A stretch of DNA of 64,000 bases from Hemiscyllium ocellatum (taxonomy: Eukaryota): NCBI RefSeq assembly GCF_020745735.1, contig NC_083435.1:21017231-21081230 (forward strand). Direction: 5' to 3'. The notes beneath the pieces are model-generated. The model saw only the letters and a program-made list of their open reading frames with translations. It had not been told where the DNA came from and searched no databases. The position numbers and the translations under genes are program-made. Below, piece by piece: positions 1 through 64,000 of this stretch. The stretch's first letter is position 1. The number at the start of each line of letters is the position of its first letter.

Positions 1-242
1 TGACATAGTTAATTAGATGTTGTTATAATGTGATGGGGCTAATGTCTCCGCTTCAAGGCAATAACAAGTGCAGAACATATGGTATTGATTTCGCCTATGA
101 TTTTATGGGAACAGCAAATTAACAAAAATAATTGATTGCGAAGTAAATGCTATGTCCTGTAGTGATGAAAGGTGACACATAATTAAAGACTTTTCTTTTT
201 ATTTTAAATACCAATGTTTTAACTTTGAACAGCATGCTGGAA

Positions 243-512
243 GGCACGGTGGCACAGTCGCGAACACTGCTGCATCATTCGGGTTCCACTCCCACCTCAT
301 ACAACTGTCGGTATGGAGTTTGCACAATCCACCCGCGTCTGCGTGGGTTTCCTCCCACAGTCCAAAACTGTGCAGGTTTGTTGAATTGGCCATGCTAAGT
401 TGCCCGTAGTCTTCAGTGTAGGGGAATGGATTTGGGTGGGTTGCTCTTCGGAGGGTCAGTGTGGACTTGTTGGGCTGAAGAGCCTGTTTCCACACTGTCA
501 GTAATCTGACTA
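243..512 (+). mobile_element. tRNA-derived V-SINE (elasmobranch HE1-like), decayed
   Basis: ggcacggtggcacagt..cactgctgc head; V-domain-like tggagtttgcac...cgtctgcgtgggtttcctcc; CR1-like 3' end gggctgaagagcctgtttccacactg. Confidence 0.85.
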
Positions 513-1627
513 TGATTGTTTTTGCATTTCCATATTGAAAAATCTGCGAACTAGACAATTCTTTTTGGAAAATATGTATGTGATACACTATTTAGCAAGT
601 TACTTCAGACTTTGTCATTTCTTATACAAGAGGTTGGCGACCTTAGTTGAGAAATCTGGCTGCCAGACGCTGGCGAAGGAAGAGTCTAAACTTCTGAAAA
701 TGCCTAACACATTTGATATTCTTGAGTATTGTTTGATCAATGATCATCCCATTCAATTATAATATAAGCAAAATTTGCAGAGCAAATTCCCCTTCGAAGC
801 AGAAATTCTTAAATGTGAGCATTTGCAAGTGATCAGAAGAATAAAAGATGCATACTAATCAAATGAAGAGAAACTGCAGAATTTCAAAAAGCAGTGAGAC
901 CTGAGTGCAGTTTTGCGTGATTAATAAGAGGTTTCCATACTATTGCAAGAATTAGGTAGGAAGGCAACTTCATTTTTGGTACGTATTGCAAGACAGGTGC
1001 AGTATACAAGTGGAAAAGTGTTTCTACAGCAATGAAGGTTATGATCCAACATTATTCAGTGCTTTGCGTTATTTTAAGAGCCCCTTAATACGTTTACTTC
1101 CCAAAATTTCAGGATGGTTCACTGGATTGATAGCTGCTGATGAAGCGACTTTCTTTTAAGAGAAATGTATGAGCAGCTTGAAAATTATGCATTGGACGTC
1201 ATGCGAAAGAATTTATGCAAATGTAGCAGATTCTGATGAGCTCAGTAGGAAGAATGGTGAGACACAGTTTGACCCCTTGAAAAAGAAACGTTTAGGAATT
1301 AAGGCATTCCAAATTAAAATGATCATAATAAGGAAGGTATTCTTTCAAGCAGTTAACGCACTTTGCATTTATTTTTGACAGACCACAGAGCAGCCATGGA
1401 CTTTGAGGATGTGAATGACTGAGCAAGAGATAAATACACACTGCAGTCAAACATTTTTCAGGCTGTTGCTGGTGTGGAGGTGATAAAGTGGAAAGAGGAA
1501 TATACATAAAATCATCCTGAATTTAACGAGTAATCATGCTGAATGCAATCCTTCTCCTATTTTCCATTATATGCACTTGGCCCCAATGTTTTTGTCAGCA
1601 TTATAGCTTTTTAATATATCTTTACAG

Positions 1628-1654
1628 ATGAAGAAGTGAATGATCTCCAAAAAG
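1628..1654 (+). CDS. Microexon A (27 nt, phase 1-1) of an unnamed coiled-coil gene; (D)EEVNDLQK
   Basis: tatatctttacag|ATGAAGAAGTGAATGATCTCCAAAAAG|gtgaat; conserved in unit 2; frame-compatible with neighbouring exons. Confidence 0.75.
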
Positions 1655-2200
1655 GTGAATAAATTGCTCTTTTTTATGTTCTTCAAAAAATAATTTTCTG
1701 TGGTGAATTGACCACCATTTCTTAGTTTTGTCTGTTGGAGGTTATGTTGCAGATGTACAGGACAGTAGTTAGGCTACTTTTGGAAAACTCCGTGCATTAA
1801 AAAATCAGCAACAGTGTGGAAACAGCGATATTTTTCCATGTTAGAATGGTGAGTGTCTTGGAGCAGAACTTTCAGGTGGTGGTGTTCCAGTGTATCTGGT
1901 CTATTTGTCCTGTGAATGGAAGTTATCGGAAATTAGGTACTTGGGTGAATTTCTGCGTCTACCTGATATATAGTTTACACTGCCATACCTGAACGTTGAT
2001 GATAAAAGGATTACATGCAGGAAAATGTTGTGCCAAGCAACTAGGATGCTTTATATTTGTTGCTGTCAAGCTTCTTGAGATATTTTGGAACTCTACCCGT
2101 CCAGAAAAATCGGAAGCATTCCAATGCACTGACAACCTGTGCCTTCGAGTTGATGCTGGCGTTTTGGGAAGATTGTGTTGCATGAATATCGAACAGACAA

Positions 2201-3672
2201 CATAGAACAATACAGCGCCGAACAGGACATTCGGCCTTCGATGTTGCGCCAACCTGTGAACTCATCTAACTTCATCCACCAATACTATCCCATCATCATT
2301 CATGTGCTTATCAAAGGATTGTTTAAATCTCATTAATGTGGCTGAGTTAACTGAATTGCCAGGCAGGGCATTTCACGGCCTTGCCCTCTCTGAGTAAAGA
2401 ACCTGCCTCTGACAGCTGTCTTAAATTTCTCACGCTTCAATTTGTAGTCATGCCCCCTTGTACAAGCTGACGTCATCATGCTTGGAAAAAGACTTTCACT
2501 GCCCATCCTATCTCATCCTCTGATCATCTTGTATGCCTCTGTCAAATCCCCTTTTAGACTTCTTCTTTCCAATGATAACCCCGACCCAAGTCTCTCAGAA
2601 TTTCTTCAGACAACGCAACTCCCTGGCAAATCTCCTCTGCACCGTTTCCAGTGCTTACCCATTCTTCCTGTAATGGGGCGATCAGAAATGTACACGATAT
2701 TACAAGTGCAGCCACACTAGTCTTTTTGTACAGTCGTAGCATGACATTATGGCTCCAGAACTCAATCCCGCTACCAACAAAACCAAACACACTGTATCTC
2801 TTCTTAGCAGCACTATCAACCTGGGTGGCAATTTGCAATGATCTATGCCTCTGCATACCCACACTACTAAGACCCTTTCCATTGACCCAGTATTCTGCCT
2901 TCCTGTTATTGTTCCCAAAGTGAACCACCTCACATATACGCATTGAATTCCATTTGCCACCACTCAGACCAATTCTGCAAATTATCCAAGTCCGCCTAAA
3001 ATCTACAACATTCTTCCACACTGTCCACTAGTCCACCGACTTTAGTGTCATCTGCAAACTTAAAAACCCATCCACCAAAGCCTGCATTTAAGTCATGTGT
3101 AAAAATGACAAACAGCAGTGGTCTCAAAACAGATCACTGTGGCACACCACTAGAAACTGGACTCCAGGCTTAATATTTTACATCAACCACCACTCACTGC
3201 CTTCTTAGAGAAAGCCAGTTTCTAATCCAAACTCCTAAATCACCCTTAATCCAATATGTCTGCATTTTCTCCAACAGCATACCATGTGGAAGCTTATCAA
3301 AGGCTTACGAAAGTCCATGCACGCATATGTTAACTGCCTTACCCTCATCCATATGCTTGCTCACCTTCTCAAAAATCTCAGTGAGGTTTATGAGACATGA
3401 CCTGTCCTTGACGAATCCATGTGGAATATCTGCAATCAAATTGTTGCTTGCAAGATGGTTATAAATCCTATCTCTCTTAATCCTCTCCAATACCTTTCCT
3501 ACAACAGATGTAAGGACGACAGGTCTACAATTACCTGGGTAATTTCTACTGCCTTTCTTGGACAAGGGCAGAATATTTACAATCTCCACTCCTCTGGTAC
3601 TAAACTTGTAGACAATGACGACTCAAAGATCAAAGCCAAAGTGTCCATAACCTCTTCCCTAGCTTCGCAGTG
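2201..3672 (-). mobile_element. 5'-truncated CR1 LINE (RT region to 3' UTR), degenerate
   Basis: Minus-strand ORFs give CR1 ORF2 motifs (PGNCRPVVLTSVVGKVLE, HGFVKDRSCLINL, CEVVHFG, SLQIATQVDSAAKK); 3' tail at ~2201. Confidence 0.93.
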
Positions 3673-6039
3673 AATTTTCGAATACTGCGTAATGGGTTAG
3701 GTATTAAATTCATAGATATTTTGTTCGCAGTCTAGTAGGACACAAAATCAAAAGGTGTGATTGCATTGTATCCCAATTGGAATGCAATATTCTCATTAGA
3801 GTTTCAAGTCACAAATTTTAAAACTGGAGTCTTCGATACTTACACCAATAATGTACTTAGCGTGATATCATATTAGACTCTTATTGATTTGTTTCATTTT
3901 TACTCATTCGATTGCTTTTAATGAAGCCAAGTACGTGAAGACATTAAGCAAACATTGCACACAATGCATTATGTTGGCGTTTCCTCCCGAGTCGACATTC
4001 CTTGACATATCTAGATGCGATAAAAAGATGACTATTAACTCTTCACTATCTTTTGCAAGCAACAAATCTTTAACTTATTTATTGCTCAACGTGGCTCATA
4101 AAGGCAGGACACTTTTAACGTTGGAATTTGGCTCGCAAAACCAGTCATTAAAAGACGTTTTGAAAATCTTTAGACAATATGGAAATTAGATGCTACAATG
4201 CTGTTCAGGATGGTGATCCATCATTTGAATCGTGACATGGAAATTATCAGTAAAAGATTTCAAAGTCAGTCATGTGTTATTAAGTGTAAAATATAAAACA
4301 AGTAGCATTTCCCGCGTGTGTATACTGCTCCTTCCTTCTCAATGATGTGGATCAAAGGTTTTTTAATTTAAAGAGCAATTTTGTTGTACTGTCGATCAAA
4401 TGAGGGAAATATAACTTAAAACAAGAAAATTGTCTGCTGGGCACAAATCTGCACAGAGACAGTCTATTTATTGGCGTTAATATAAAGGTAATCTCGTGTT
4501 GGAATTTCACAAACTATTTAGTGATTATTTCATGGGCTCGTCTCTCCGGTCTTGTATGTGAACAATATCGTCGAAACATCTATCCTATAACTAAGACCAA
4601 CTGTCTTTCTGTCATTTTCTGTGTATGTGGTTAAATGATATATTTTCTATATTGCTTACTCTGTGTAATGTACTTCTGCAACTTCCATGTTACAAATGAA
4701 ATGGAAAGACTTTCAAAGAATGTAAAAGTTTGAATTCTCAATCAGTGAAGAAACGACGCGTGGAACTGCAAATTCTTGGCATCAGCAATAGAATAGACAG
4801 AAACAAAATAAAATATCTCATTGAAGTTTAATGTTCAAACTTCTGCTGTCGAAATCTTCTCACTTTATTTATTCGTTTTTCTTTAGGCCACTCATAATAT
4901 TTGTGCATTTTCCGTCTTTGTATATTTGAAAATGTGAGATTATCAATCGGGGAAAAAATAATTGACGCTACATTTGGAAAGGTGCATGAATGGGAAAGGT
5001 TCAAAGTGATAAGGATCAAATGCAGGCATATGGGGCTAGCTTAGTTTAGGGGATTTATTCAGTGTTATCAGTTTGGAACAAAGTGTCTACTTTGTGCTGT
5101 ATGACTCTATGACTCTTATTTCAAATCTGTGCTGCCCTGTTCCATTTACAGGAAAATTCCTATTTCGTGAACTCAGATTATGGCAGAACGTAGACATCTT
5201 TAATTTCTTATCTGTAACTGTTTGAGTTGGTAGATAAAAATGCACTTACTGACTTAGAAACTTCATTAGTCAGACAACAAATGGAATGTTAAAATAATTA
5301 ATTAAGGAGAGACGTAGTTGCAATGGAAGCATTTCAGACGAATTTAACTAAAATTATTCTAGAGATTAGTGTTTGTCTACTAAGACAGATTGAGCAAGTT
5401 GGACCCACACTACTTGAATGTCTAAGAATGAGGTATGATCCAAAGGTAGCATGTAAGATACTATACAGGATTGGCAAACCCGAAATTGAGAGATTGTTTA
5501 CTATTACGGGACTATCTAAAATGTCAGCTCATTTTTTAAGGTAAGAGACAACAGATTCAAAATAAAGGAAATGAATTCGTTTTATCAAATCTGTTGCAAT
5601 TCATTGTCCCAGAATAAAATAGCGGTGGGGCACTCCGCATGTGGAGGTAGGTAAATATTAATCAATAACAGTTTGAAGATTTGTGGAAAGAGGGAAGGAA
5701 ACTGGTGTCAGACTGAGGCGAAATGAAACGTGTTTATATTTTAAATGGTGAAGCATGTCTGACGGGCTGACTTACCTACTCCTGATCCCAGTTCTTTCGT
5801 TCTCATCTTATGATGTCAGAGAGAATTGTTCAATTTCGTCGTTTAAACAATTTTCTCACATATGCGATGATTCATAGAATATTTCAAACTCATTTGAAGA
5901 GTACTATACACAGTGAGTCTTAAACAAGAAGTATCTTTTTTGCAGGGCCTCCCATGAGGGTGCAGGAAATTATCTATTTGTAAGGGATTGGGTGGTAACG
6001 AAATATACAGGGAGAATTCAAGCGTGAGTGTCCCAGAAA

Positions 6040-6360
6040 AAATAACATGGAACTGTACAAAGCAGAAACAGGGCCCCCTCAAGCCCTCCAAAGCTCCGTT
6101 GACACATTTTGCTCTTCCAGGCCAACAAAATGTCTTCAATAAACTTTCAATATCCCTCTGTTCCCTTCATGTTCATTATTTCACCAGGTCTTTCATGAAT
6201 GCTGCTATTGTGTATGCTTCTATAACCTCCTCTGGTAGCCCGTTCCAGGCATTCATTACCATTTATTTGAAAAACCTGTGTCGCACATCTCTTTTTAACT
6301 TCCTCTCATTCCTTTATTGCATCTTGAACCTGAAATTGACTCATCCACACTGGAAGATTC
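6040..6360 (-). mobile_element. CR1 3' fragment (left part lost in unit 2)
   Basis: Unit-2 ORF 38601-38873 reads FFKQIVMNAWNRLPEEVKEA, the CR1 ORF2 C-terminal motif. Confidence 0.7.
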
Positions 6361-6756
6361 AGTTTGATGTTATGCAGTGTCTAATTATAATCCAGGTAAT
6401 TTTGTGGCTCAAGCACCAAAGTGGCAGTTTATGGAGGATATGCTGCAAACATTTCTGTACGAATGTTCTCTTTTTATTAGAATATTTTCTTTTAAATTAA
6501 TTATACTTAGTTAACGTAAGGATATAGAATAAATATCTGATAATATTGAGTGTGTGCTGTGTGTTCATCTCTTGAACTTACACTCGCCTTTTGAATGTCT
6601 ATCGCTAACATTGTCATAAAAAGGAATCTAAAATAACATTCAAACACGTCAGGTGTATGAAATTCATGATCATCCTTCTGAAATCAGCAAAACAATTTTC
6701 CTTTAATTTTGCAAAGCATTTTCATACTTTTCTTACTTCAATCTACATTTGAACAG

Positions 6757-6783
6757 AAAAAAGTCTTCAGGAAAAGAATGATG
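6757..6783 (+). CDS. Microexon B (27 nt, phase 1-1); (E)KSLQEKND
   Basis: Long pyrimidine tract, then tttgaacag|AAAAAAGTCTTCAGGAAAAGAATGATG|gtaatt; resembles exons E and G. Confidence 0.75.
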
Positions 6784-7345
6784 GTAATTTTTTTAAGCAT
6801 TTTGTCACTTTGCACATTTCAGGACAGTCGAATAATGCAACTGCAAGGGGAGCACAATATTTGATAATGCACGAGAGGAGCGAGTTTCTTGGTGAACAGC
6901 TAAGCACTGACTGATAGAGACGTTGAAATAGCGAGTGCAGAAGTCAGATGAGTATTGAAGTGTAAGTGCTCAATTTTGTTAAATTTTAAAACGGGCAGTT
7001 TGACTTTGATATATCATGCCCCTGAACACTCTTAATGAAGCAGCAGCATGTCCAATGTGTATTCCTGTTTTTCACTTTTCAAAATCAAGGCACTTAGTCA
7101 TAATTTATTTAGCCTCTGGTGTATTTGAGTGTCATAAAGTGATTGCAACTCACATTCTTAACATTATTGTCACTGGCATTCATACGCTACTCAATCTTAA
7201 TCGTTAAATATTAACCAATTTAAAATAATGATTTGTCTTGAATTTCGATTAACACTGTTGAAATTGTAAATAATTAAGTGCGTTTAATATTCGTTGTAAT
7301 GGAAGAATTCCACATAATGTGAGTATTTTACAGTCAACATCAGAA

Positions 7346-7640
7346 TAGAGAGCATAGGTTTAGGTTGAGAGGGTAACATTTTGAAATGGACCTGAGGGAC
7401 AAATTTTGCAAGGAAAATGTGGTATGTGTTGTGTGTATGGCATGAGCAGCCAGACGAAGTGTTGGAGGCTGATGCAATTACAACATTTAAAAGACATCTG
7501 GATAGATATATGAATAGGACAGGTTTAGAGGGATGTAGTCAAAGTGCTGGAAAATTTACTAGATTAGATAAGGATATTTGGTTCACATGGACTATTTGGA
7601 CTAAGGAGTCTGTTTCAGTGCTTCCAATCTATATGACTGC
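7346..7640 (+). mobile_element. CR1 3' fragment, unit 1 only
   Basis: VWHEQPDEVLEADAITTFKRHLDRYM, the CR1 ORF2 C-terminus. Confidence 0.8.
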
Positions 7641-7684
7641 GTGGTTCTAAGTCAAACATGGAAGCATGGAAAATGGAATTCTAC

Positions 7685-7958
7685 AGAGGTAAAAACAATG
7701 ACTGCAGATGCTGGAAAACAGATTCTGGATCAGTGGTGCTGGAAGAGCACAGCAGTTTAGGCAGCATCCAAAGTGCAGCAAAATCGATGTTTCAGGCAAA
7801 AGCCCTACATCAGGAATAAAGAGAGTGAGCCTGAAGGGTGGAGAGATAAGATAGAGGAGGCTGGGGGTGGGGAGAAAGTAGCATAGAATACAATGGGTGA
7901 GTGGGAGAGGGGATGGATGCTGCCTGAACTGCTGTGCTCTTCCTGCACCACTGAACCA
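7685..7958 (-). mobile_element. Penelope pseudo-LTR fragment with inverted terminal arm
   Basis: Reverse complement of the pLTR at ~47200-47450; 45-nt inverted arms (7725-7769 / 7915-7959); 16-nt direct repeats gaaaatggaat(t/g)ctac. Confidence 0.88.
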
Positions 7959-8469
7959 GAAAATGGAATGCTACTCCAACGTGACGTGGTAATTGAGCTA
8001 CACGTCCATGTCCAACGTGACAACGCTACACGTTCAGAACCAATATATTTGCAGGGTAATACTTTTCTTCATGTTCTGTGTGAGTGGGCTCGAGGGCAGG
8101 AGACTGGAAACCAGTGCAAAGAGAGAAGAATGAATGTGAAAGATAGAAATGTACAAAGAAAACGAGCAAGGTAAGTTGTAGTAGTGCTAGCACGTTTTAA
8201 AACATATGAAAATAAGCATCTGTAAAAATGATTTATCTCAACTGCATGCAAATATTAATGGTCTAATTAAATAAGATTGCTAAGTTCATAGCATACGTAG
8301 TTGTAAACAGATACGATAACTCTGTGACTATGGCTCCGAATGCCGTGTGATATAGCGTGATAACTAAGCACTCAAAGGTATTCAATATTTAGGAAAGTCT
8401 GACAAAGAGGAAAATGAGAAAAATGCTTTTGCTAGTGAAAATACAAATCATTGTATACACAAACAGAGG

Positions 8470-8610
8470 TCAGAACTGAGGAAGAGTTATCGGACCAGAA
8501 AAGTAACATTGATTTCTCTATACAGATGCTGCCAGATCTACTGTGCTTCTCCAGCAATGTCTTTTTAATATTTCGGATTTACAGCATCTACATTTGTTTC
8601 GGTTCTTAAA
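8470..8610 (+). mobile_element. Decayed pLTR/SINE-like repeat with eroded hammerhead core (also at ~40865-41000)
   Basis: ctgaggaagagttatcggaccagaaaag...cagatgctgccagatctactgtgcttctccagca resembles the pLTR tail seen elsewhere in the window. Confidence 0.5.
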
Positions 8611-10802
8611 AATTATGTGTAGGAGGTTAATGCATAAAAACTAGTTGTCAAGATATTCTGGGTAGGACTAAGAAGTAACAACGGGTAGAAAACATTAGAA
8701 TTTGTCTACACGCCTTCAAACTGTACTGTTACAGAAGGGTGTTAAGCTGAATGGGAAATTAGACATCCATGGAGGAAGAGTGTTTCAGGATTTGTAAGTT
8801 TTAATGTATGTATTAACTGACAAAACCATGTTTGCAGTCATATTCATTCGGGAGAATTATTGCATCTGTAAAATATGCTTTGTTTTTCAAGTAGAAACCA
8901 ACTGGAGAAGAAGCTATCTTAACGTTGGTTCTTATCCATAAAGTGTTTACTTTATAATGTTTTAAATGGTCCTGCATCGAAACAAAAATTCAACTTAATA
9001 CTAAAGAATTGTTAATTGTGATTAAATGGGAATTGAACAGAACAAAAACCAATGTCCTAAGTTTAATCAATGGAAACAAGACATTTATGAGGTGTGAGTT
9101 GTCTGTCAGAGATTTTGTCATTTCTGTACAGGGATGAGGGTAAATAAGCAATGGTTAATATATATTTCAGGTAGTGGGAAGCATCATTACGAGAGGGAGG
9201 ACCTCTTTGATGAAACTTTCCACTTGTTTTGCAGCAGGCACAGCTGGAGGCTGTGGGCTGATATGCTATCACGTAAACTGGAAGGACAGATTTCATTTTC
9301 TAATGACTGATTTATTTTTCCCCAAAAGTGAAGGCAATCTATTTTAACTATTTAAATTGATGAATTCTCCTACACTTACGAAGCCAATATAATGTATCCT
9401 TAATACGTGGAATGAAATAATCAATAGAAGACCTGTCGGTCGTAACACATCCAATTTGCTTTTGGTTTGAAAAACATGTTTAAGAACCGACAAAATGCCA
9501 GTGTGCAAAGAAGAGCAGCGTCAAAATTTGCCACAATCACAACTGCTTTGCATGAGATATAATTGCCTTGGCTACTTCTTGGAAATAAACGCATGGAAGG
9601 TAAAGACTTTGCAAATAATCTCGTTTCTATATTGTTTGATAGCATCTGTTTTCAGTCAGTTTCAGGCAATGGAAATCGTTCAGATAAATTTAGTAAAGTA
9701 TCATGTTCCCACTGCTGATTTTTTTTAATCAAAATATTTCGACTTATTTATTCATGTTGCTAAACTTATTACAAATCTAATTAGCTGCACTGCAGTAATT
9801 CAAATAAAAGCAACAAATACATTTGCCAGTGGAGTGGTATTGCCATCTCTTGATCAGAAGTTCAAAAAATAGGATAACCCAGAAGGATTACACTGGTGGT
9901 TATCAATTACCAAAACGCGTTTGTTTTTTCTGATTTGACTCACACTTTTATTTCTTCCATGCAAGTGCTACCGCGCACACACGCCATGACCACCTTTGCC
10001 TCTCAATGCACGCCAATCCATTATAACTAGCATTGAAGTTTTAAAGGTATTATGCTGAATCGTGTGCAAGCAAGAATTTTCATACATTACTTCCCTGTCC
10101 TTAATGAGCTTATATTTGGGTAATTGCACAGCGTGAAGTCCAGTAGATAAAAGGAAAACAACTGGAAGAACGTAAGCAATAGATAACATTGGAAACACAG
10201 ATATTTTGAAACAATTTAATCGGCTAATCTGGCAGGCATCCTATGTGGGGGAGAAAAAGATTACTCAACTTGCAAAGATGTTTAGTCGACTTAATGAAAA
10301 TTCATATATGAAGAATAGCAAGAAGTGTTGATGCCACAGTAGAAAAAAGAATCGGCCAGAGAAAAATACGTTACAGTCATTTGTCTCCATTAAATAACGT
10401 TTGGTATTACATTTTTACAGCAGCCTGTAATGAATCAAATTAGGAGCTTTGTGCCCGAGTACGATGCCAGTCTGTTATGTTTTGTTTCCATGCAATGACA
10501 AATTGTCAGCTATCATGTTCCCGCACTGCAGTTACCACGTGGAAACAAAATTAAAAATTCAACCTGTAGAATTAATTTCTGATTGGATATAAAGCTGGTC
10601 ATAAATATTGACAAACTTTTACATGAAAATGGAACATTTGTTTTGAATATATGTCAAGTTGTGTTAACGGATAAATAGTTCATCATTTAAAACAAAAACA
10701 TTGCAAATTGAATTTTCATTCAACAATCTAATTTTTCATTATGAACGAATACAGAAATAATAGTTGTTATTTTCTGACCTCATACATTTATTTTTATTTC
10801 AG

Positions 10803-10826
10803 TGGAAACAATTATGCAATTGAGAG
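10803..10826 (+). CDS. Microexon C (24 nt, phase 1-1); (V)ETIMQLR
   Basis: Branch-point-like ttctgac, then ttttatttcag|TGGAAACAATTATGCAATTGAGAG|gtgagt (consensus donor); identical in unit 2. Confidence 0.85.
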
Positions 10827-11139
10827 GTGAGTACTTGCGAAATAGCTCATGCTGTGTGGACGTTAATCACGTTGAGTAATATCATCCACATACTGATTAG
10901 AAATGAAAATTAAAAATCAATCATTTATAAACAAACGTGTTAGCATTGTTATTTAGTATGGTCTAGCAATTATGTTCACTAGCACGTTGATGGTGGGGGT
11001 CGTAATGGCTGCTTTATGAATAATTTCATTCAGTCAAACATTTTTGATGACAACGTATCAAATGGTCCAAGTAATTTAAATCAATCGCTCACTGAAACAT
11101 TAATTGTAATTTTAATTTTTCAATGTTTTCGAAATTGTA

Positions 11140-11232
11140 AAAAAGTCACACAACACCAGGTTATAATCCAACAGGTTTAATTCGAAGCACTAGTTTTCGG
11201 AACGCTGCTCCTTCATCAGGTGGCTGTGGAGT
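11140..11232 (-). mobile_element. Short pLTR-like fragment of a second family with a hammerhead-like motif
   Basis: Minus strand: cac-CTGATGA-aggagc-agc-gttcc-GAAA-acta-gtg; partly deleted in unit 2 (~43560-43610). Confidence 0.6.
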
Positions 11233-12079
11233 ATGCTAGTGTTAAAATGTTAATGCTAATATTGAAAATGTTAATATTCAAAACCATATGGCATTGCTGA
11301 TTGAAGTATGTTCTATCTCGCAAACTAATACGTTGATGTGACACGAATGCCTGTGAGCTGTACATCCCGATATTCACTGGGTTATAATTAAAATGGAAGG
11401 TGACAAAAACAAATCAAGTCGATCAATTCTTCGACACAATACTAATTCAGATGATTCCAAATCGTTGATTGGAAAAAATAGAATGCATTACGAATCTAAG
11501 AAGCAGGCATGAATGATTTTTGTCAAGGCGCTTGACAGAGTAATATACGGATGCAAGTTACATTTATTTTTTACAATTCTGTAATAGTACTGAGGTAGAG
11601 AAGAAAACGAAAGCTGTTTATTGCGGGATCTCTGCAATTTCACTTACTGTAGAGCTGTATTTTCAGAATCGTAATGTTTATATAGAAGATTCAATTACAG
11701 AAAAGAATGGTCCAAACAATTGGAGATGAGCAAAATCATTAAGCTGATGACAGTTGACTTTCAATCAACTTACAGAATAGTCATAAGGTCAATAGTCTCG
11801 GATTCTAAAAATCTTAATAGTTGTGGACATTGACACAATGTCAGATGACGAAGTTTGAAAGAGGTTTTAAAAGATCCGGACTTAAATTTTAGTCTTGCAG
11901 GAGACCCTTATGTATTCGAATTATCACGAAACAAAAAAAAACATATTTTCATGCAGAAACATCGACTTAGGTCCACCTCCAACAAGCGCCAATTTAAACT
12001 TCAACTGTTGACATTCACTGATACAGCAGGCATTACATCGCCCACCATCAGCATAGTAGTGGACGTCATTGCTCAACCA

Positions 12080-12545: not shown

Positions 12546-12639
12546 TCTTTAAAATTTGGCCTCAAGCAGAACTGCATTCGCTATATAGATAAGGATGTTA
12601 GGTCAGACGCTAGGGATTCATTGTTGAGTAAGTCGCCTG

Positions 12640-17296: not shown

Positions 17297-17335
17297 CAAC
17301 ACATTAAACATATCTGTGGAGGGGGCTATGTTCCC

Positions 17336-50927: not shown

Positions 50928-53340
50928 TCGCTGCACTTTGACTGCTGCCTGAACTGCTGTACTCTTCCAGCACCACTGATCCAATACAATCTACAGTCTT
51001 GTGTTTAAATTCATTAATATTTGTTTATTAGTTACAATTATAATACAACAATATCTCACCTATAATATGTAACGGCAGTTATTTTAAACCCTTTGAGAAT
51101 TGTGTGATCGGACGATCCCTTCTACTGTTGACGAAATATCTGGTTTCCACCTACCCAATACCTAATTGCTATAAGCGTCATTACCTTATCTAGTTGCCAT
51201 TACTATGAAGACTGGCATTCTGACTGTAGAAACTGATGTCTCAACTAACAATTCGTCTCAACAATGAACAGGTAGCAGCACAAGTCATGACCATTTTAAT
51301 GCTTTTGAATGATTCTCCTTCAAACAATTATGGCGTGATTCCTTGATTAGACATTTTTTTTAATATCGGCCTTGAGCTTCAGCAAATTTTCTTCTTTATT
51401 TCTGTGTATTTCTGTCAACTAAAGAAGTTTTTAAATGTTTTTTTTTATCCAGGATATGGTTGAGAACTGACCATCTGAAGAATTCTAAAACCGTGGAGGG
51501 CACGGTTAGGCTAAATAGACAAGTGTTTTTCCTTGGGGCGGGAAAGTTCAGAACTAGCGGGCATAGGTTTATGGTGAGACACGAAAACCTTTATAAGGGA
51601 CCTAAGAAGCAACATTTGGTCGTGTATGCAACAGGTTGGGAAAGGAGGCGGTGGAGGCTGGTACAATTACAGTATTCAAAGTGTATTTGGAAGGTCACAG
51701 GAAGAGTTCAGAGGGGTATGAGTCAAATGCTAGCAGATGGAACTAATTTAATATAACTGGTCAGCATAGATAGGTAGTGCCGAAGGGTCTGTTGCTGTGC
51801 TATACATCTGTATGACTTGACGAGTTCACAAACACATTTTTCCGCGTTGTTCCTCATGACAGTCCTGGCGATGTCAATGTTCAAGCCCAATCATCAGGGT
51901 TCAAAAATTGGCGTACAGTTAGCATTATTTGATGCAACGATGTGCAAATTGAGTTAGTTGTTAAACAGCTTCTAGATTAACTGTCAAATTGTGATCTTGC
52001 AATATCTTTCGTCCAGATTTGGTAACATCATCATGCAAAGGGCAATGAGTCGATGAAATAAGCTGTAAGAGGAAATCGTGGAGGCCGGTGCAATTTTAAC
52101 ATTTAAAGGGCATCTGACTGGCTATATGAACATAAAGAGTTGAGATGGATATGGGTGAAATGATATCAAATGGGACTAGATTAATTTATGGTGTCTGGTC
52201 AGCATGGACGAGCTGGACCAAAGCCTTTTTCCATGCTGTGCAGTTCTGACTATATAAAGGTGACCCATCAAGCAGATATTAATCGATGAGAATATTCAGA
52301 CTGTTTAATCAGTGACGAATTAAATGTAGAAATATAATTATCTTCATCTATGATGTCTTCCTGTTGCTTGTCTTTATTATTCTGACAGAATAATGTATTA
52401 ATTATATGGAAACTGTACTGTGCACAGTCGAAAGTAGCATAATGTCTCTTGTTCTCATTTTACCCATTTGATATTTGAAACCAAATGGCGCCTATCCTGA
52501 ACTGGAGAGCATGATCAACACTGGCATCGAAATTTCCCAGATTTTACTTTCACCCTTTGAGATGGCAATATGAATGTAACCACGATTAGAACGAATCGTT
52601 CATGTACAAAATCAATAGGAGACGGGAGCCCTAGCTCAGATCTTGGGACTTATGATATTTCTAATAAAATCGACCCGTAAGTGATGCATCGTTTTTGTTT
52701 TCGTTTCTGAAAGGAGGCTACAGGTCGCCCAAGATCCTATCGTGGAAAACAAAGCAATGTCTACGTACAGAAAGATCAAGTGTAGTCTCTGATTACCAGT
52801 AGAACTTCTATTTCTCTTCTTGGTCATTAAGTTGACTCAGTGAAGGTGGTGACATCAAGATGAATCTTGATTATTGATGTGACAGAATTGTTTATCTTCT
52901 GCTGTGACTGTCGTTCCTTTCGGTCACGGGCAAGTGTTCAACAAGTACGAGAATACTTAAAAATGTGTTTCTTCAATCACAAACCTACTGCCTCTGTAGC
53001 ACTTGGGTCTCCAGTTATTTGACAGACTTTGTCTGAATTGTGCATTGTCTGGATCGAAACATTTTATCCTGAAAGCAAGATGTCTGCATGGCAATTAGAC
53101 TGCTCCACCAGGGTAATTGTTTTCCATCGAATGACCTGGTATAGCATTTGTGTTCCAAACCATGTCTCCAAACATTATCATGGGTTCAGATTCATCAGTA
53201 AAGCTGTTCAATTGCACAGCCCAATACTCATCGTCTACTGATTTCAGCAACAGTCATATCTGAATGAATCCTTTGGACAGGAAGTAAACATGCAAGCAAA
53301 ATTGTTATTCCGTATGTAACGAATGAATTTCTCTTCACAG

Positions 53341-53367
53341 AGGAAAGTCTTGAATCAAAGTTGGAAG
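53341..53367 (+). CDS. Microexon E' (unit 2); (E)ESLESKLE
   Basis: tttctcttcacag|AGGAAAGTCTTGAATCAAAGTTGGAAG|gtgaga. Confidence 0.85.
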
Positions 53368-56300
53368 GTGAGATCATTCATTTTTGTGATATGTTCTATG
53401 ATGATCTTTTCTGAATTGCTTAACACATATAAGACGGTGAAAAGGCTGCTAATCATACAACTTGAATCATGCCACATCCAGAGTAAACTATTTGCAGAAT
53501 GGCTCGAAATGAATGATTATGCACCAACACTACTATTCATGTTGATTGGTTTATATCTACTTAATACTGGGTGAAAAATAAAGCAACACTCATTTTTTAC
53601 ACTGTTTGTTACATAGACACATTGTTACATTGTTCATACGTTTATCAGTTGCATTCATACCTACAATATTTTATGAGCGATTGCAATCAATCAAGAGCAT
53701 TTGATGCACGTCTACTAGTTTAAGTGTAATGGAAAATGCTTTGGCTTCAGCCTGCTCCTGTCGAAAAACATTAGATAATGACAATTCAATTGGTAGTCTT
53801 GGCGTTTCTCACAGCTTAAATGTTAGGCAGGTCACCACAGATAGTTCGGCCCATTAACTCAAAAACGTTCTACCAAACGATTGTGTCAACCTGATACTGA
53901 AATTTATAAACCACATTAATGCTACATCGAAGAGATAAGTTCACCCGTTAAGTCATGCAGACTGGTGTGCACTTCTTTCGGTGCTTTATCTCCATATTGT
54001 ACAAATTAAGTATTCCACCTATCGAACACCAGCAGTTATCCATTCAAATGTAATTATAATGATGAATGTTAATGTGGCAGCGCAAAGCCTCATTTGAATA
54101 GCATATTCGAACTCATTCCCAGCTATTTCTGTGGTCGTCATAATTTTTTTAATATATAAGCAAACAGAATTCCCAAATTACATGTCTTCTGAAGTGAAGA
54201 AGCCATAAATTATGGACAACTTTTCTTTACTTAACAAGAGTAGTTACTTATTACAAATAAATGAATCTTCAAGCAACAGATGTGCATTTCTGAACAATTA
54301 ATAAATTACTCGATTCATTCAAACTCTAACCTCTGATTGAAATATCCTTACAGAAATGCTGAGCATACAAGTATAGAGAGGACAAAAAACAAACAGAGTT
54401 ATAGGCAGAGGTTATGGGTAGATTTATGGATAAACACTGAAAAGTAGCTCAATATTTCCTTTTCCCAAAGTTTCACTGCAATGGTCAATTTTGATTTTAA
54501 AACTTGGTGCTCTTTCATTTGTATTTCGCTGATATTTTCAATTGCTATTAGAAACAGCAATACGGGTGTTTTACACTGACAAAGATGTTCTTTGCTCGTT
54601 AAGATTCACAGATTACAATAAATGGTGAGGGAAAAATACACAGCCTTTCCTCATTTTATGACATCCTTTACTATTCCAGAGAAATGGCACAGTTCCTGTT
54701 CTTACAAAATCGCATTTCTTTGAACAATTACTTGCGTCCAAATTATCAGCATCCAGAGCGCGACTGATAGAAGTCTTGACCCACACTGACTTTGCCACAG
54801 TCAACAGTCTCCAGATCAATAGTTTCTTGAAGCTGGCCAAATCTCGATTTGCACAGAACCCTTGGCTCCAACTCATCTGAAAACCTACCACTCATTACAT
54901 CTAAAGATTGCAGTGTCAATGCCTCTTACAGCATGTGCTAGTTTATTTACTTTGATTAAATGTATCAATCCTTCAACCGTCAATCATTTCGGAATTTCAC
55001 TCTAAAAGCAAAAATGTAACTAAAATGATGCAATATTTACATATTATAGCCTAACACAAGGAAACTCAGGATAACAGTGCCGTACATGATCAACTGGTTC
55101 TTATGCCTAGTGCAGTTCATTTTATTTTCAATGAATCAAATTTATCGTATGTAAGTATTCCTTTCCATTTGAGCATATTGCTATAAATATGGAAATTCTA
55201 AATATCGATTGTGGAAACAAAACATTTATCTATAGATTCATTCGCACTGTGTGAATGTAAGAGCCATGTACCTTAAATCTTACATTCAGCTGATTGATCA
55301 GTGTAGCATCTGACTGCAATGGAACAGATACAACAACTTATCCACAATAAGCCTCAGTTGCCAAAGGCGGTAGTCATCAGATCTGAGAAAATAACAATAA
55401 CTTCACGGCTGCTGACTCACTACTACAGGACAGATGAGAAGCTAAACTTTGCCATTTGATCTCTATTCTTCCTGTTGCAAGTATGACATCACACAATACT
55501 GAAGCTTTGCAAAAGGAACGGGACAATTAGCTCCATGGTGGTACAATTGGAGCGTTATTCAAAGAGGACACTAGATACCTCAAACGGAACTAAACTGATA
55601 TAAGTGACACGAACCCTTTTGTATGAAGATCAGAGCCATTTCTCTAAACATATTTCTCATGATAGCATAGAACGTGCAAGACAAATCAACATCCAATACT
55701 GATTTTGCACCTGCACATTCAGGTAGATAACAAGAACAGAAGATTCAGACTTAGCAGACTGTTTCTAGTTCATGTTATTGCATGAATAGAATGTGAATTC
55801 GTATTTTCTGCAAGATTAATATTATGGCGATAATATTAGCATAATGCATTTTTTCTCACATCATTATTATGTTCTGAATGCTCTGCATGACATGAAGTAA
55901 AATAATATTAGATACAGAATCTATCAATACGTCAATGTTCTTTTCTGGATTACTTTACTTTAGTGTGGCCTCTTTAACACTCAGATGTCACTCAAAGTTC
56001 AGTGGAAGGTAGATTCTTAATAATACACATGTTATGAACGAATGGTCAACACCCAACTGTCTTGGTACTTGCATACGATATGTGGCTGAAGTGAAACATA
56101 CTTAACTTTTGTCAAACTGTTTACATGAACTTACCCAATCCTATGAATCTACAAATCCAAAAAAGAAAAATCAGCTGATGAATTAGCGCCATTTTCGCAA
56201 TTTCATCTCCCACTCTACTTCATTCTGGAAACAGTCAATCTAATGGAAACATTCGCGTGGATGAATGTCAGGTTTCACTATCCTCATGGCAACTTGTTGT

Positions 56301-57735
56301 GGTCAACTGGTCAATTTCTGTCCTCTTTTATCGCTGTTATACAAACCAAGGTCTGCACAGTGTTCAGTACTGCGGGATTTTTAAAAAATTAAAACGAACA
56401 AGCGAGAAGACAACATTGACCACAAATAAAATTAGCAACTTTATTATTTTGCTGTCATGAGTGGGAGAAATTGCATGATCATGAATACTGCTGAAACTTT
56501 ATAAATTTAGATGCAGGGTCAAGCCGTTTGAAAAATTATACATTTCATTCTTGATCAGGCTCGTTGGCATTACCTAACAGTAGGCAGAAGTGGGTACAGC
56601 AGATGCTGGAGATTAGAGTTAAGATTGGAGTGGTGCAGGAAAGCAACAGCAGGTCAGGCAAGGTCCCAGGAGCAGGAAAAATCACCGTTTTGGGAAAACG
56701 TCATTCACCATTCTATTACCTAATAGTATCAATCCACATGCAGAAATGTGATGGAGATTTGTGCTGACAACATTGGATTTTTAAACCAAAGAAAAAACGA
56801 TCAAATTTTCTACTTGTACAAAAATAGCATGCACAGGTTTTAAGTGAAAAAGTTTTATCTCTGCTTGAGCAAATTTCCAGATAATGAGCGGCTGCCGGCA
56901 TAAACATCAAATTCTGCTACTCTAGAGCTTACCAAGTTATTGATTGGGCTAACTCAGGATAATGGAAACCCATCGATGGTGATGGACACATAAGGCAAAA
57001 CGTTATCTAGGAATAGAATATTGTAGCATCGCAAGTGGTCTCTGATGATGAGTTGTTTGGGGACTGGAATTAGGTGGGTATAATGTCGGTGTTTAACGAT
57101 GACAAGCATAGCGATTTTCTGAGTTGCTGTCCATGGATGGTGAAGTACACAAAACGATGTCAAGCATAGCGATTTTCTGAGCTGCTCTCCATGGACAATG
57201 AAGTACACAAAATTATGGGGATTGATGGTAATGTGGTTTGATAATACTTATAATTATGGGAAACTGGGAATAATTTCTGAAAATCTGAAGCATCCAAATG
57301 CTTATGTAATTCAGCATTGTGACCTCGTGATAGCTGATTTGCCATTTTTAATGTCACTGGAAAAATGCCACCCCAGTGTATGGCATTTGGTCAGACATCC
57401 GAAAATTTGTCATCCTCTTTTGAGGCCCATGACCAAAGCATCACAAGCTAACGAGACTCATCACATTCGATCCCAAAAGGGACTAGGACAAAGCTTTGAA
57501 TTCAACTTGCAATCTATTTGCATTCACCAGGGATAATAATGATTAATGTTAACGAAACTGAAAGAGAAAAGATGTGTATACTTATTCCACTTTTTGCATC
57601 TATTCAAATACTTTTGTGCAAAATTAAAGAATGTGTGAGGAATGAAACAGCAATGTAGGTGTTAGTTCGTTCCTTAATAATGAATAAAAATGAGATAAGA
57701 AAATAATATTCACAAACATCATTTTTCGTTCACAG

Positions 57736-57771
57736 AAATTAAATCATTGAAAGATGCTCTAAACAATGCGG
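57736..57771 (+). CDS. Microexon F' (unit 2); (E)IKSLKDALNNA
   Basis: tttttcgttcacag|AAATTAAATCATTGAAAGATGCTCTAAACAATGCGG|gtgagc. Confidence 0.85.
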
Positions 57772-58944
57772 GTGAGCATGTTCAAAGAATATGATTCGTC
57801 AATGTGTCTTTTAGGGGAGGACAAATCGCGATGATCAATATACTGAGATCCTAGGTTATGGATTTCTTTTGTTGGAATCATTTACCTTGGAAGGTAACAG
57901 CGTTGGCCACAATGTGTTTTGGAAACATATATTGGAAATTAATTCATGGTTCTTACATCGTAAATTTTAACGCAGACCGCTTTAATGCATGCAATCCACA
58001 AGTTTGAAGTAATTTGTCTGCAAATTTACCTGCAGATGAGTAATTATTGCAACACTCGGACATCTGAAATTGGTCAAACATGACTTTCGTCCGGAGGCTC
58101 AATAAATTCTGAAAAGAAACCTTTCAACGTGATGTCTTTGGGCAGAGCATGTTTTTGGTTACTTTAAGAAATTTGCATCATTAAAAAGCCTTCAAAATAT
58201 AGAAAATAGCCACACAAAAAGATGCATTCAGTCCAAGTCGTCCATGCCGAACAGATATCTTCAAATAATCCAGTCCATTTTATTAAAATTTGGAGAATAT
58301 CCCTCTAAACCCTTCCTACTCGTAGACCCATCCAGATGCCTTTAAATGTTGTATCGTACCAGACTCTACAACTTCATCTGGCAGTTCATTCCATGCATTC
58401 AACAACGTCTGTGTGAAAAAAATTGCCTTTTGGACCCTTTTAAATCGTTCCCCTCTCACGTTAACACTATGTTCTCTAATTTTGGACTCCCACACCCCAG
58501 AGAAAAGGCCTGATTTATTTATCCTATCCACGCCCCTCATGACCTTATAAACCGCTATAAGGTGACATTTCAGCCTGTGGTGCTCCAGGGAAAATAGCCC
58601 CAGCCTACTCGGCCTCTCGCAATAGCTCAAACAAACAAACCCTCGCAAAATCATTAGAAATCATTTCTGAAGTCATTCAATAACTTTGTTATATTGAATT
58701 CGCAAAGCACAGTTTACCATGATTCAACAACCAGAAGCATATGAATGTATCAACAGAGAATAAAATAGAACTTCAATTCTTCGGCAATGCTTCACCATTC
58801 AGTGTGACTCAGCTATTGACGAAGAACTAAGATAAATGAATGTGATACATGTTTATTCTTAAAGACCCCCAAAAAAGAAAGAAGGAATTAGTAATGTTGA
58901 ATAATATAGGGTTAGCATATGGACTTAAAGACCAAAAATGGAGA

Positions 58945-59815
58945 TAATAGGAATGCAAATTTGGTTGCTGAGCTGGTCGATTTGTTCTCAGACGTTTCAT
59001 CATCATGCTAGGTAACATCGTAAGCGAGCCTCTGGTGAAGGTGGAGTTTGAGAGTGTGGTGCTGAAAAAGCACTGCAGGTCAGGCAGCATCCGAGGAGCA
59101 GGAGAACCTACGTTTCGGGCAAAAGTCTTTATCAGGAAAGGGTCAGTAAAGGGTTGGTTTTCTGCCCTGCTTACTATTTAACTGTCGCAGATCACATAAA
59201 TGTGATCCAAATCTATATGCTTGTTACTGAAGTCCTGGTTTGAATGCCAGTCCTTTAGGAATTCCCGTATTTGTCTTTGTTTAGCCTGTCCCAGGATAGA
59301 TGTATTGTGTCAGTCCAACTGGTGTCCCTCTTCCTCTGTGTATATGGATACCAGTGATAGCTGGTCATGCCTTTTGATGGCGAGTTTGCGCTCCTGTATC
59401 TTAATGGCTAGTTTCCTGCCAGTTAATGTACCGTCATGTTTATTGCAGTCCTCACAAGTTATTTTGTATGTCATTCGTTCTGCTGGTTTTTGGTACAGTG
59501 TCCTTTAAATTCATGAGGAGCTGTTCCAGTGTCATGTTATGCTTGTGGGCTATGATGACACCTAGGTGCCAGAATTGTCTAATTGTCATCTCCAAAATGT
59601 CTTTGATGAATGGCATGCTGGCTAGAGTCTCTGGCCATGTTATGTATTCTTGTTTAGGCCTGTTGAGCAGGAATTGGTGGACTGTGAACACCGCATACCC
59701 GTTGTTCCTGAATACGTTGCATGGTTGTTGTTTTTTCTCCTTAAGAACACATTGTTTCTGCTTAGCGAACGAATTTACAACCTGATCACGTTCTGAGCAA
59801 CAATTCTTCTCCAAA
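58945..59815 (-). mobile_element. Old Penelope-like fragment, unit-2 copy
   Basis: ORF 59452-59814 is homologous to 30309-30787. Confidence 0.8.
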
Positions 59816-62191
59816 ATCCAGGCTTGTGTTAAAGTTACGTAAGGTGTAAAGTCTCCAATTTCAATAATGTATTAGTACAAATATCTTGAAAAATCAAAAT
59901 CTGTCATAGCTGCAAATGTAAATAAATTGGATAAGACAGATCAAGTTCTTTCGTTGACATATTTGAGAGGTTACGAATGCTGTTTTTGTAAGTAAAGGAC
60001 AATTGTCGAGTTTTCAAACTAAATTTATCGAGAACAGCTTATTTATCTGCTTTAATTTGGAAATCTAAACTGAATACATCAAAATTACGAATCATGAACA
60101 CTTTCTTCTTGGTTTTAGAGGGAAGACAACCGATGTTAAAGAATTCTCCCTAACTACAATATAACTCACTCACACGAAATCCCAGCTTTTTCTTGCAGCT
60201 TGGAGGCCGCTGTGAGGGAGACATGAACAGTATGGAGTGTTGCAGACCACATTTGCAAAAATGATTATAATTTTTTCATTCATTGGCGTTATAAGACTAT
60301 CAAGTAGTTATTGGAAGTTGATGAATATTCTTCAACATCCGTTTCTGCCCGTGGAAAGAAGAGCAAAATCGCAATGTTGTGGCCGTTGAAGCTCTTGGCA
60401 ACAAAATAGAGAAGAGACCATTACATTGCATGTTGATGCCTGAACGTATCTTTTTGCAAGTTTGTATGGGGAGACTGGAGGTTTTTTAATGACAAATTGG
60501 TCGGGTGTAGAGCTCTAAAATATTCAGGGTTGCATTAATGCAACCTAGACATGAGGATTTTTTTTTAAATGAACAATGTGGACGTTGAGAAAATAAGATC
60601 AGGATTTTTTTATAACAACACCGCTCAGAAAGCAATCGTCTGTTGAGATATTGGCAACTTCTCCAAAACTCACATCTTAGTGGTAGCTCAATAAGGTCTT
60701 ACAAATTTTATGCGAATATCAAGCTTGATAACTTTTTCTTTGACAGGCCAATTTCAAAACAACGGCTAGCCCAACACTACAACAACTTCATTTAATGCAA
60801 CAAGGTTTGACGAAATACATCATTGAGCTGTTTGGACTGTGGCCCGAAATGTTTAATGTCAAACAATTTTATGCCATTCATAAAATGTTTCATGCATCAT
60901 GACATTAGTTACTGTATGATAGGAGATCAAAAATAAGTACCTCCCAACTTTTATGATTGTCAGAGGATTTAGAGATTGTTCTTCTAACCACTTCAGACAT
61001 GCGTTTGAATTCCACAGTATGGGATACGAAATTTGGTTTCAATAATAATTGAATTTGGAGACATCTTATCTAAGGATGAGTATAACAGTGATGGTGTAGA
61101 CACCCAAATGATTCACAAAGGATTTTCTTCATGAAGGAAATCTGCTTCCTTCATCCAGACAATATGGAACAGCAATGCACTTCAGAATAAACTGAACTCC
61201 AAATTAGCCTCGACTTCCAACCAATTAAATAGCAATTAGAGATTGACAACAAGTAATCATGATGCCAGTCATACTCACAGGTTCGAGGAGATTATCAAAA
61301 ATGTTTGAAATCTACTTGATAGCGACTATTCAGTTCACCAGTGATCGCCATGCCCTACTAAACAGCCGATACTATAAGATTGACATTCAGTACATGACAA
61401 GCACAGGTTGTGGGATGCTTTATTAATCCATGTCTCCAAATATCCTGCCAATATCTTGAGTGGGGGCATTGCACATTTATGACAGTTTGAGGGAATTGTG
61501 ACTATCTTATTTGCAGTTTTGAAGAATGAGTGATCGTTTTATTGAAGTTTTGCAAAGTACTTAAAGGATCACATAAGGTAAACGTAAGTAAGATATTTTC
61601 TTTAGAAATCAGAATCATGGGTACATTTTTAAAAACTGCGATGGCATTTAGTTCTAAGATGATTACTTTTTTAAACTCAAATAGTTGTGATTCAAAATAC
61701 TGTGGAAGCTCCGTCTTTTCGTATGTTTAAGTCAGAGACTTATGGCAGTCTGGTTACCAATGACATTCAGAATTTTGTGGACTTGTTGGAAGAAAGGATT
61801 TCAGTATCGATCAGGTATGTTAATATTTAAAGGAGAAGCAGGTTCAATGCACCTACTACTGTTCCAATGCTATTGTGTTCAATGTTTTTTCAAAATATAA
61901 AAACCCTTAGTGTTTAATATTCTCACTACATGTTAAAAATCCTGAATATCCCCAGAGAATAATAATATTGCACGTAATAAGTCACAGAACAAAATGTCTC
62001 CAAACTAATTTTGTTCGAGATAACATTTGGCAATTGAACTAAATGGAGGCATCAGGTCAGCTGAAATTATTTTATGTAAGAAACTGTATCCGAGTCCTTA
62101 GATAAAATATTCTTGGACAATAACTGAGATATGTATATAATCGAAATATAAACAATAAATCGAAGCATACTTTCACATTGTTTTGCACCAG

Positions 62192-62218
62192 AAGAAACTT
62201 TACAACAGAAAGAATCGG
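62192..62218 (+). CDS. Microexon G' (unit 2); (E)ETLQQKES
   Basis: ttttgcaccag|AAGAAACTTTACAACAGAAAGAATCGG|gtaagc. Confidence 0.85.
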
Positions 62219-62410
62219 GTAAGCATATTAAACAAATGCATCGAGCATTTATCTGTCATGAGAATTCCACAAGTTTGATTTTCTTTCAACTGTCCTACCA
62301 ATTACTGTGACACACAATGAAATTCTGTTTGACGTCATGCCATTAGTAGTTAAAGTGGAGACGCAGTTCATATGTATCTCATAGATATTCATGGATTATT
62401 ATACTTTCAG

Positions 62411-62437
62411 AGTTCAACGAAAAGTGTAAAGCTAATG
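62411..62437 (+). CDS. Microexon H' (unit 2); (E)FNEKCKAN
   Basis: attatactttcag|AGTTCAACGAAAAGTGTAAAGCTAATG|gtaaat. Confidence 0.72.
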
Positions 62438-63311
62438 GTAAATGACACTGCATTTTCTCAACAAATTAATTTGCATAAGTAATCACCAGTTCGCTAAAAA
62501 AAGAAAGCAATCAGCATCTCTCGTGAGCAATTTTATTCCTCATTTGTATTGTCACCTTGATTTGAACTCGATCATGAAAGCAATGTCCCCTCCAAGTTAA
62601 ATTGCCAATAATTGGAATGTTTCAAGAATTTGCTTTGTCGTCAATAGAGTTTCACGGAAAAGGAATGACATTGGGAGAGATTTCTTGATCAGTGCGACCA
62701 AACAGCAGAATTAGTACTTTCGTTTTAACTCATGATGTTTTCATCATTCCACCACCAAAAACAGTCCAACCTGTAAATATGTCATGGTACGACAGAAGTC
62801 ATTATTCAACTGTTAGCTCGACTAAGATCTATATTCTGAAAACTGACAGCTCCATTAAAGGAGTTGGCACCCGTTTTCATGACAACAAATATATATGGTA
62901 TCATTGTCGGAGAAAATAATCAAAAGATTACTGATTTTCAGCATTAGAAATGACGTAGGTCAGTAATGAAGGGGATACATAGGGAGTGGTGGGTTTGCAA
63001 GAAATCTGTTTACCGTAATCATAGCTAAATTCCAGATTCATATTCAAAGTGCAGGAGAACACTTTTTTAACCTATATTCCCATTAGAAGAAAGTAGCTAA
63101 AAACTTACATATGTTTTTCAACGTTTTATGTCAAATTATTGGCTTACTATACACGTCTTTACGTTGTTTCAAGATACGGAAGGTGAACAGCAAATATGTA
63201 TAAATGGGAAGTCGAATTCATTTTCGTCGCATTGAAAATATCACTGTTCAAACCATAGCGAATCTCAGAGGGATATGTCAGTTGAAAAAGTTCTGAAATC
63301 AAACAGAATAA

Positions 63312-64000
63312 TGAAATAGGTAATTTGATGTTGTTATAATATGATTGGGCTCATGTCTGCGCTCCAAGGCAATAACAAGTGCAGAACATATGGTATTGAT
63401 TTCGCCTATGATTTGATGGGAACAGCAAATTAAAGATAATAATTGATTTGAAGTAATTGCTATGTCCTGTAGCGATGAAAGGTGTCACATAATTAAAGAC
63501 TTTCCTTTTTATTTTAAATACCAATGTTTTAACTTTGAGCAGCATGCTAGAAGGCACGGTGGCACAGTCGTTAACACTGCTGCGTCACAGTGCCAGAGAC
63601 TCGGGTACCACTCCCACCTCATACAACTGTCGGCATGGAGTTTGCACAATCCACCCACGTCTGTGTGGGTTTCCTCCCACAGTCCAAAACTGTGCAGGTT
63701 TGTTGAATTGGCCATGCTAAGTTGCCCGTAGTCTTCGGTGTAGGGGAATGGATTTGGGTGGGTTGCTCTTCAGAGGGTCAGTGTGGACTTGTTGGGCTGA
63801 AGGGCCTGTTTCCACACTGTAAGCAATCTAACTATGATTGTTTTTGCATTTCCGTATTGAGAAATCTGCGAACTAGTCAAGTCTTTTTAGAAAATATGTA
63901 TGTGATACACGATTTAGCAAGTTACTTCAGACTTTGTTATTTCTTAAAGAAGAGGATGGCGACCTCATTTGGGAAATCTGGCTGGCGGAGGCTGGCGAAG
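63312..64000 (+). repeat. Tandem segmental duplication unit 3 (partial, runs off window)
   Basis: Aligns to 1-~680 and 34524-~35200, including the V-SINE. Confidence 0.95.
63553..63835 (+). mobile_element. V-SINE (HE1-like), unit-3 copy
   Basis: Same element; keeps 12 nt (cagtgccagaga) that are missing in units 1 and 2. Confidence 0.85.

Follow-up and report, generated by a model that had tools for sequence, protein, structure and literature searches.

The 64,000-nt stretch of the Hemiscyllium ocellatum genome analysed here, referred to as the window, carries a head-to-tail array of large tandem units whose candidate micro-exons would form a repeated cassette inside one gene. The window spans positions 21,017,231 to 21,081,230 of contig NC_083435.1 and does not contain any N. 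Self-BLAST identified two complete units, followed by 689 bases from the start of a third. Collinear blocks on the plus strand pair positions 1-35199 with 34524-64000 at 91-93% identity, and the offset between paired blocks decreases in steps, starting at 34,523 and ending at 28,807 bases. Positions 1-678 additionally pair with 63312-64000. A first-pass annotation of this DNA had described a head-to-tail duplication of ~29-35 kb with at least three units. The unit lengths (Table 1) bear out the size and orientation, and two of the units are complete while the third is visible only through its opening bases. Substitution divergence between units 1 and 2 is 6.7% over 25,649 aligned columns and is fairly uniform along the unit (85-96% identity per 500 bases), and the length difference of 5.7 kb stems from private insertions. 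A 58-nt sequence present as two tandem copies of 90% identity is found at the same place in both units (28030-28147 and 57095-57212), and this small tandem pair consequently predates the large duplication.

Each complete unit contains eight conserved candidate micro-exons that maintain an open reading frame across the unit boundary. To identify exons, we scanned for YAG..GTR windows with a length divisible by three and an open phase-1 frame conserved in both units, starting from the junction letters AG/ATGAA and AATG/GTR, where the slash marks the splice junction. The former motif occurs at the homologous positions 1626 and 36150 and the latter at 33624 and 62434. The scan yielded eight coiled-coil-like exons per unit, listed in Table 1, and one extra candidate. 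The exons of a unit are 27, 27, 24, 27, 27, 36, 27 and 27 nt long, which adds up to 222 nt or 74 amino acids. All 16 exons possess phase 1-1 boundaries, a CAG acceptor and a G/GTRA donor, and the 444 nt obtained by joining them in order represent 148 codons with zero stops. At the junction between exon H of unit 1 and exon A' of unit 2, ..AATG/gtaaat and cag/ATGAA.. combine into AAT G/AT GAA, encoding N-D-E in frame. Both the one in-frame 74-residue module per copy and the H-to-A' join had been proposed in the first-pass annotation; our scan independently recovered the eight exons with their 222-nt total and the same junction letters. Introns span 188-10,579 nt, with a boundary intron between H and A' of 2,524 nt. 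A strict pattern requiring CAG preceded by a pyrimidine-rich tract, 24-36 nt that end in G and are open in phase 1, and then GTRA is found at 15 sites on the plus strand, 14 of which are listed exons, and at 3 sites on the minus strand. Donor scores calculated with a rough position matrix range from 5.3 to 12.2; the 95th percentile for GT sites across the window is 6.0. The extra candidate at 10901-10936 and two others at 9666-9692 and 34373-34396 do not show the CAG..G/GTRA pattern and were dropped. A possible ninth 27-nt phase-1 exon on the plus strand, encoding (x)SDELSRKN, is located 372 nt upstream of exon A (1230-1256 and 35752-35778). It combines a good donor (G/gtgaga) with a poor, purine-rich acceptor tract, differs between units at 3 of 27 positions and could be cryptic, alternatively used or decayed.

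Table 1. Tandem units, candidate exons and transposon insertions in the window. Exon sequences are flanked by intron letters in lower case, with slashes at the splice junctions.
Feature	Positions	Strand	Details
Tandem unit 1	1..34523	+	34,523 bp; collinear with 34524-63311
Tandem unit 2	34524..63311	+	28,788 bp; self-BLAST
Unit 3, start	63312..64000	+	689 bases, within the H-to-A intron; matches 1-678 and 34524-35199 at 91-92% identity
Exon A, unit 1	1628..1654	+	27 nt; (D)EEVNDLQK; cag/..G/gtgaat; phase 1-1, open frame
Exon B, unit 1	6757..6783	+	27 nt; EKSLQEKND; cag/..G/gtaatt; weakest donor/acceptor pair
Exon C, unit 1	10803..10826	+	24 nt; VETIMQLR; cag/..G/gtgagt; unit 2 copy identical
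Exon D, unit 1	13658..13684	+	27 nt; DLKAIMEGL; ctcctcag/..G/gtaaag
Exon E, unit 1	24264..24290	+	27 nt; EESLESKLE; cag/..G/gtgaga; unit 2 copy identical
Exon F, unit 1	28670..28705	+	36 nt; EIKSLKDALNNA; cag/..G/gtgagc; unit 2 copy identical
Exon G, unit 1	33386..33412	+	27 nt; EETLQQKES; cag/..G/gtaagc
Exon H, unit 1	33601..33627	+	27 nt; ELNEKCKTN; cag/..AATG/gtaaat; in-frame join to A'
Exon A', unit 2	36152..36178	+	27 nt; K to T change; conserved-exon scan
Exon B', unit 2	39182..39208	+	27 nt; K to E change; conserved-exon scan
Exon C', unit 2	43221..43244	+	24 nt; conserved-exon scan
Exon D', unit 2	45652..45678	+	27 nt; one synonymous change; conserved-exon scan
Exon E', unit 2	53341..53367	+	27 nt; conserved-exon scan
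Exon F', unit 2	57736..57771	+	36 nt; conserved-exon scan
Exon G', unit 2	62192..62218	+	27 nt; one synonymous change; conserved-exon scan
Exon H', unit 2	62411..62437	+	27 nt; L to F and T to A changes; ends in phase 1
LINE private to unit 1	14306..17296	+ (sense)	intron D-E; no unit 2 counterpart; Pfam Exo_endo_phos and RVT_1
SINE-like insertion private to unit 1	31745..32039	+	empty site kept at ~60851 in unit 2
CpG-rich retroelement	46698..50983	+	intron D'-E'; direct terminal repeats; self-BLAST

The candidate exons have changed less than the units as a whole. Exons of the two units differ at 6 of 222 positions (2.7%) compared with 6.7% overall (binomial p = 0.007), whereas ~15 substitutions would be expected at the overall rate. 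Four of the changes are non-synonymous (K/T, K/E, L/F and T/A) and two are synonymous, corresponding to a dN of 0.023, a dS of 0.053 and a dN/dS ratio (omega) of 0.43. The dS value is near that of the introns and dN is approximately one third of the intron value. Such values are expected when a protein is under purifying selection, although the counts are small. Sequencing runs of a second organism label contain the two 31-mers sampled from exon F and the adjoining 12 nt at either end, a weak hint, from two sampled words, of conservation across species. The region from 31500 to 37400 (5.9 kb, mostly intron) is present only in runs of one organism label. A stretch of ~260 bases around and downstream of exon E (24256-24518) is nearly the same in both units. 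It includes uninterrupted matches of 92 and 138 nt, which are longer than expected at 7% divergence, and may reflect a splicing element in the intron or a short tract of gene conversion.

The 74-residue module is predicted to form a heptad-based alpha-helical coiled coil. It is rich in glutamate, leucine and lysine, contains no proline and only one glycine, and carries a net charge of about -10. A hydrophobic period of 3.52 residues represents its strongest spectral peak and was not reached by any of 2000 shuffles. In a simple register trace with crude scoring, heptads are unbroken over exons D to H (~45 residues). Since 74 equals 10 x 7 + 4, the heptad frame would shift by four positions with each unit in a stutter-like manner. 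Given the heptad periodicity of the 74 residues, the ~11 nm of helix per unit put forward in the first-pass annotation, at 1.5 Å per residue, is a fair figure. Signs of a smaller ancestral repeat were not found inside the unit, where alignment of one half of the peptide to the other is no better than that of shuffled sequences (815 of 2000) and exon flanks share no similarity with each other.

The array appears to be old and stable. Over the first 678 bases of the unit, the three copies are equidistant (7.1%, 7.2% and 7.3%), with 23, 23 and 24 private changes per copy and only two sites that differ in all three. Equal distances and near-equal numbers of private changes correspond to a star tree, which argues that the units arose in quick succession. 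The pattern indicates one old burst of duplication followed by independent evolution, with no later homogenisation or recent unequal crossing-over, and private insertions of short and long interspersed nuclear elements (SINEs and LINEs) agree with such an old burst. As judged from the copies in the window, this old, stable appearance argues against an array that is currently variable or dynamic and weakens the proposal of the first-pass annotation that copy number could differ among individuals. Unit number may differ between species. Separately, sequencing runs of 0.7-4 thousand million letters contain 72-100% of the words sampled from mostly intronic stretches. This exceeds what is expected for low-coverage whole-genome data and may result from RNA rich in unspliced transcripts or from multi-copy sequence.

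Private insertions account for the difference in length between the units. The LINE in intron D-E of unit 1 (Table 1) contains endonuclease and reverse-transcriptase domains and is bordered by an (AC)31 microsatellite (17340-17401) at the edge of the insertion, and further stretches found only in unit 1 are located at 4100-6172 and 17743-20324. AAAATG is present at either end of the private SINE-like insertion, and the empty site surviving in unit 2 indicates that this element entered unit 1 after the duplication. In total, four SINE-like copies of ~285 nt are observed (244-507, 31748-32031, 34768-35032 and 63554-63831); older and younger copies are 76-80% identical and share the head GGTGCACGGTGGCACAGTGGT. 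The CpG-rich retroelement of unit 2 possesses terminal repeats (46884-47414 and 50442-50972) of 90% identity, and its version in unit 1 is shorter (20325-21860). Its open reading frames (ORFs) are proline-rich and zero Pfam matches were found for the element. A YxDD-like motif and a GIY-YIG-like motif (ORF at 21256), both seen by eye only, suggest a Penelope-like element, an impression by eye that has no counterpart among Pfam matches. The only CpG-island-like segments in the window, at 20.7-21.0 kb and 47.5-50.9 kb, both lie in this retroelement.

The organization of the window suggests that it lies inside a single gene. Because the first exon starts in phase 1 and the last exon ends in phase 1, neither end of the coding sequence is located in the window, and exon H' requires a further exon downstream. 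Neither a conserved ATG leader exon combining a signal-like core with a good donor nor a conserved non-transposon ORF of at least 90 amino acids was found within the unit, in agreement with the first-pass annotation, which saw neither a promoter or start exon nor a large domain exon or terminal exon in a unit. Rfam and tRNA scans of the window returned nothing. Phase-1 entry and exit combined with the lack of a leader exon, a large ORF and a CpG island outside the retroelement pieces favour an internal cassette array over a gene cluster. The sequence is thus best read as one gene that contains an internal cassette array, although this is an argument from absence. The same architecture had been proposed in the first-pass annotation; its head-to-tail units, symmetric exons and continuous frame across the boundary are all observed here, while the splicing of all exons into one mRNA is a part that we infer from exon structure.

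Overall, we assign a probability of roughly 0.7 to a model in which the window lies wholly within the coding region of one plus-strand gene whose cassette was duplicated, each unit adding to a coiled-coil rod. In this model, a ~30-kb block carrying eight symmetric phase-1 micro-exons would have been duplicated head to tail at least twice, and the copies would then have diverged independently, by ~3.5% each, while gaining private transposon insertions. Each exon would open with the last two bases of one codon and close with the first base of the next. Due to this symmetric phase and the 222-nt total, splicing from H to A would keep the frame and contribute 74 residues per unit, and each unit would lengthen an alpha-helical coiled-coil stalk or rod by ~11 nm. 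Rod length may be significant for function. If the array comprised many more than three units, the locus would represent a megabase-scale gene in which hundreds of micro-exons specify a coiled-coil rod exceeding 2,000 residues and measuring several hundred nm, with no named vertebrate counterpart; we regard this extension as rather improbable. If the exons are spliced as read, the locus would constitute a natural case of a coiled-coil stalk extended in 11-nm steps through duplication of a 30-kb block, and would allow testing of the functional tuning of rod length, for example as a receptor-tail spacer or a cytoskeletal ruler. Loci of this kind are also difficult for gene prediction, as exons of 24-36 nt lying between introns as long as ~10 kb can cause genes to be missed or mis-built in annotation.

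Several observations weigh against this model. Acceptor scores from the rough position matrix are only moderate for several exons, the heptad register in the crude trace is irregular over exons A to C, and the signal for selection amounts to six substitutions. The rotated 74-residue unit has no matches among proteins of 41-130 amino acids, the sole length range covered. In addition, exon use may be alternative instead of all exons being included in the same transcript. The exons would then be real, with units or single exons skipped or alternative, and rod length would be set by splicing instead of genomic copy number. Micro-exons often depend on special splicing support, and the usual need for such support, the weak acceptors and the fact that any subset of the 16 symmetric exons keeps the frame are all compatible with alternative use. 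However, all eight exons are intact in both units after ~7% divergence and show an omega of ~0.4, which suggests that each copy is used, and we consider splicing-defined rod length unlikely.

It is quite improbable that the array represents a decaying or silent relic, either part of a pseudogene or a set of unspliced exons, which has stayed intact through the slow change of shark sequences. The missing protein match and the thin evidence for selection would be in line with a relic, but none of the 32 splice sites or 148 codons has been disrupted in spite of 6.7% divergence and many nearby indels, and the deficit of exon substitutions relative to the overall rate also argues against a relic. 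It is highly improbable that every unit constitutes a small gene of its own with a separate start and end. No positive support for such a gene cluster was found, although very small first or last exons could escape our scans. Against it, the exons of each unit enter and leave in phase 1, the frame crosses the unit boundary and neither a conserved leader exon with a good donor nor a non-transposon CpG island is present. An assembly artefact, with haplotypes or collapsed reads placed in tandem, has no observation in its favour and is barely credible: the three copies are mutually equidistant, and 7% divergence together with several private transposon insertions, one of them with its empty site preserved, goes far beyond allelic difference.

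The proposed single-gene cassette array resembles known systems in which proteins are lengthened through internal exon duplication. In the nebulin triplicate region (NEB TRI), eight exons are repeated three times, and a segmental-duplication region in titin is comparable (PMC9109913, PMC9142044). For both NEB and TTN, protein length scales with copy number (PMC9109913, PMC9142044). The shark array is similar in that a block of eight exons is arranged head to tail inside what would be a giant structural gene and each copy contributes whole in-frame modules: both full units contain a matching set of eight exons, the 222-nt total is a multiple of three and the frame continues across the boundary. 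In contrast, NEB and TTN blocks are described as highly identical and as prone to recurrent copy-number change while the shark copies are ~7% diverged and equidistant. The shark units are also larger with exons of only 24-36 nt, and the shark module is a predicted coiled coil instead of actin-binding repeats or PEVK.

Tiny exons encoding coiled coils are found in the cytoplasmic tails of chicken BG proteins, where 13 to 36 exons of 21 or 24 nt per gene encode heptads (PMC4046983). The shark window likewise contains an array of tiny symmetric exons with heptad repeats, and in both BG and butyrophilin-type systems and the shark locus a long alpha-helical coiled coil would be built from many tiny exons, with BG tail length following exon number. 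Shark exons measure 24, 27 and 36 nt, compared with 21 or 24 nt in BG, and their commonest length of 27 nt does not correspond to one heptad. Shark introns span 0.2-10.6 kb and the repeating element is an eight-exon block of ~30 kb. BG and butyrophilin genes further contain Ig V-type and transmembrane exons upstream and, for butyrophilins, a B30.2 exon downstream, whereas no Ig, transmembrane or B30.2 exon is present in the window. Literature searches on micro-exon coiled-coil arrays and on 27-nt exons returned no fitting system. The kringle IV-2 region of LPA also consists of a tandem genomic unit with whole exons, each copy of which adds a single module to the protein. Its units hardly differ in sequence and are highly polymorphic in copy number, in contrast to the old and stable appearance of the shark array. 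Lengthening of proteins via intragenic duplication of exon blocks is thus well known, as are coiled coils encoded by tiny exons in BG. The shark locus, as read from its sequence, would combine block duplication with a tiny-exon coiled coil; its units and introns are unusually large, and its copies appear old and are diverged.

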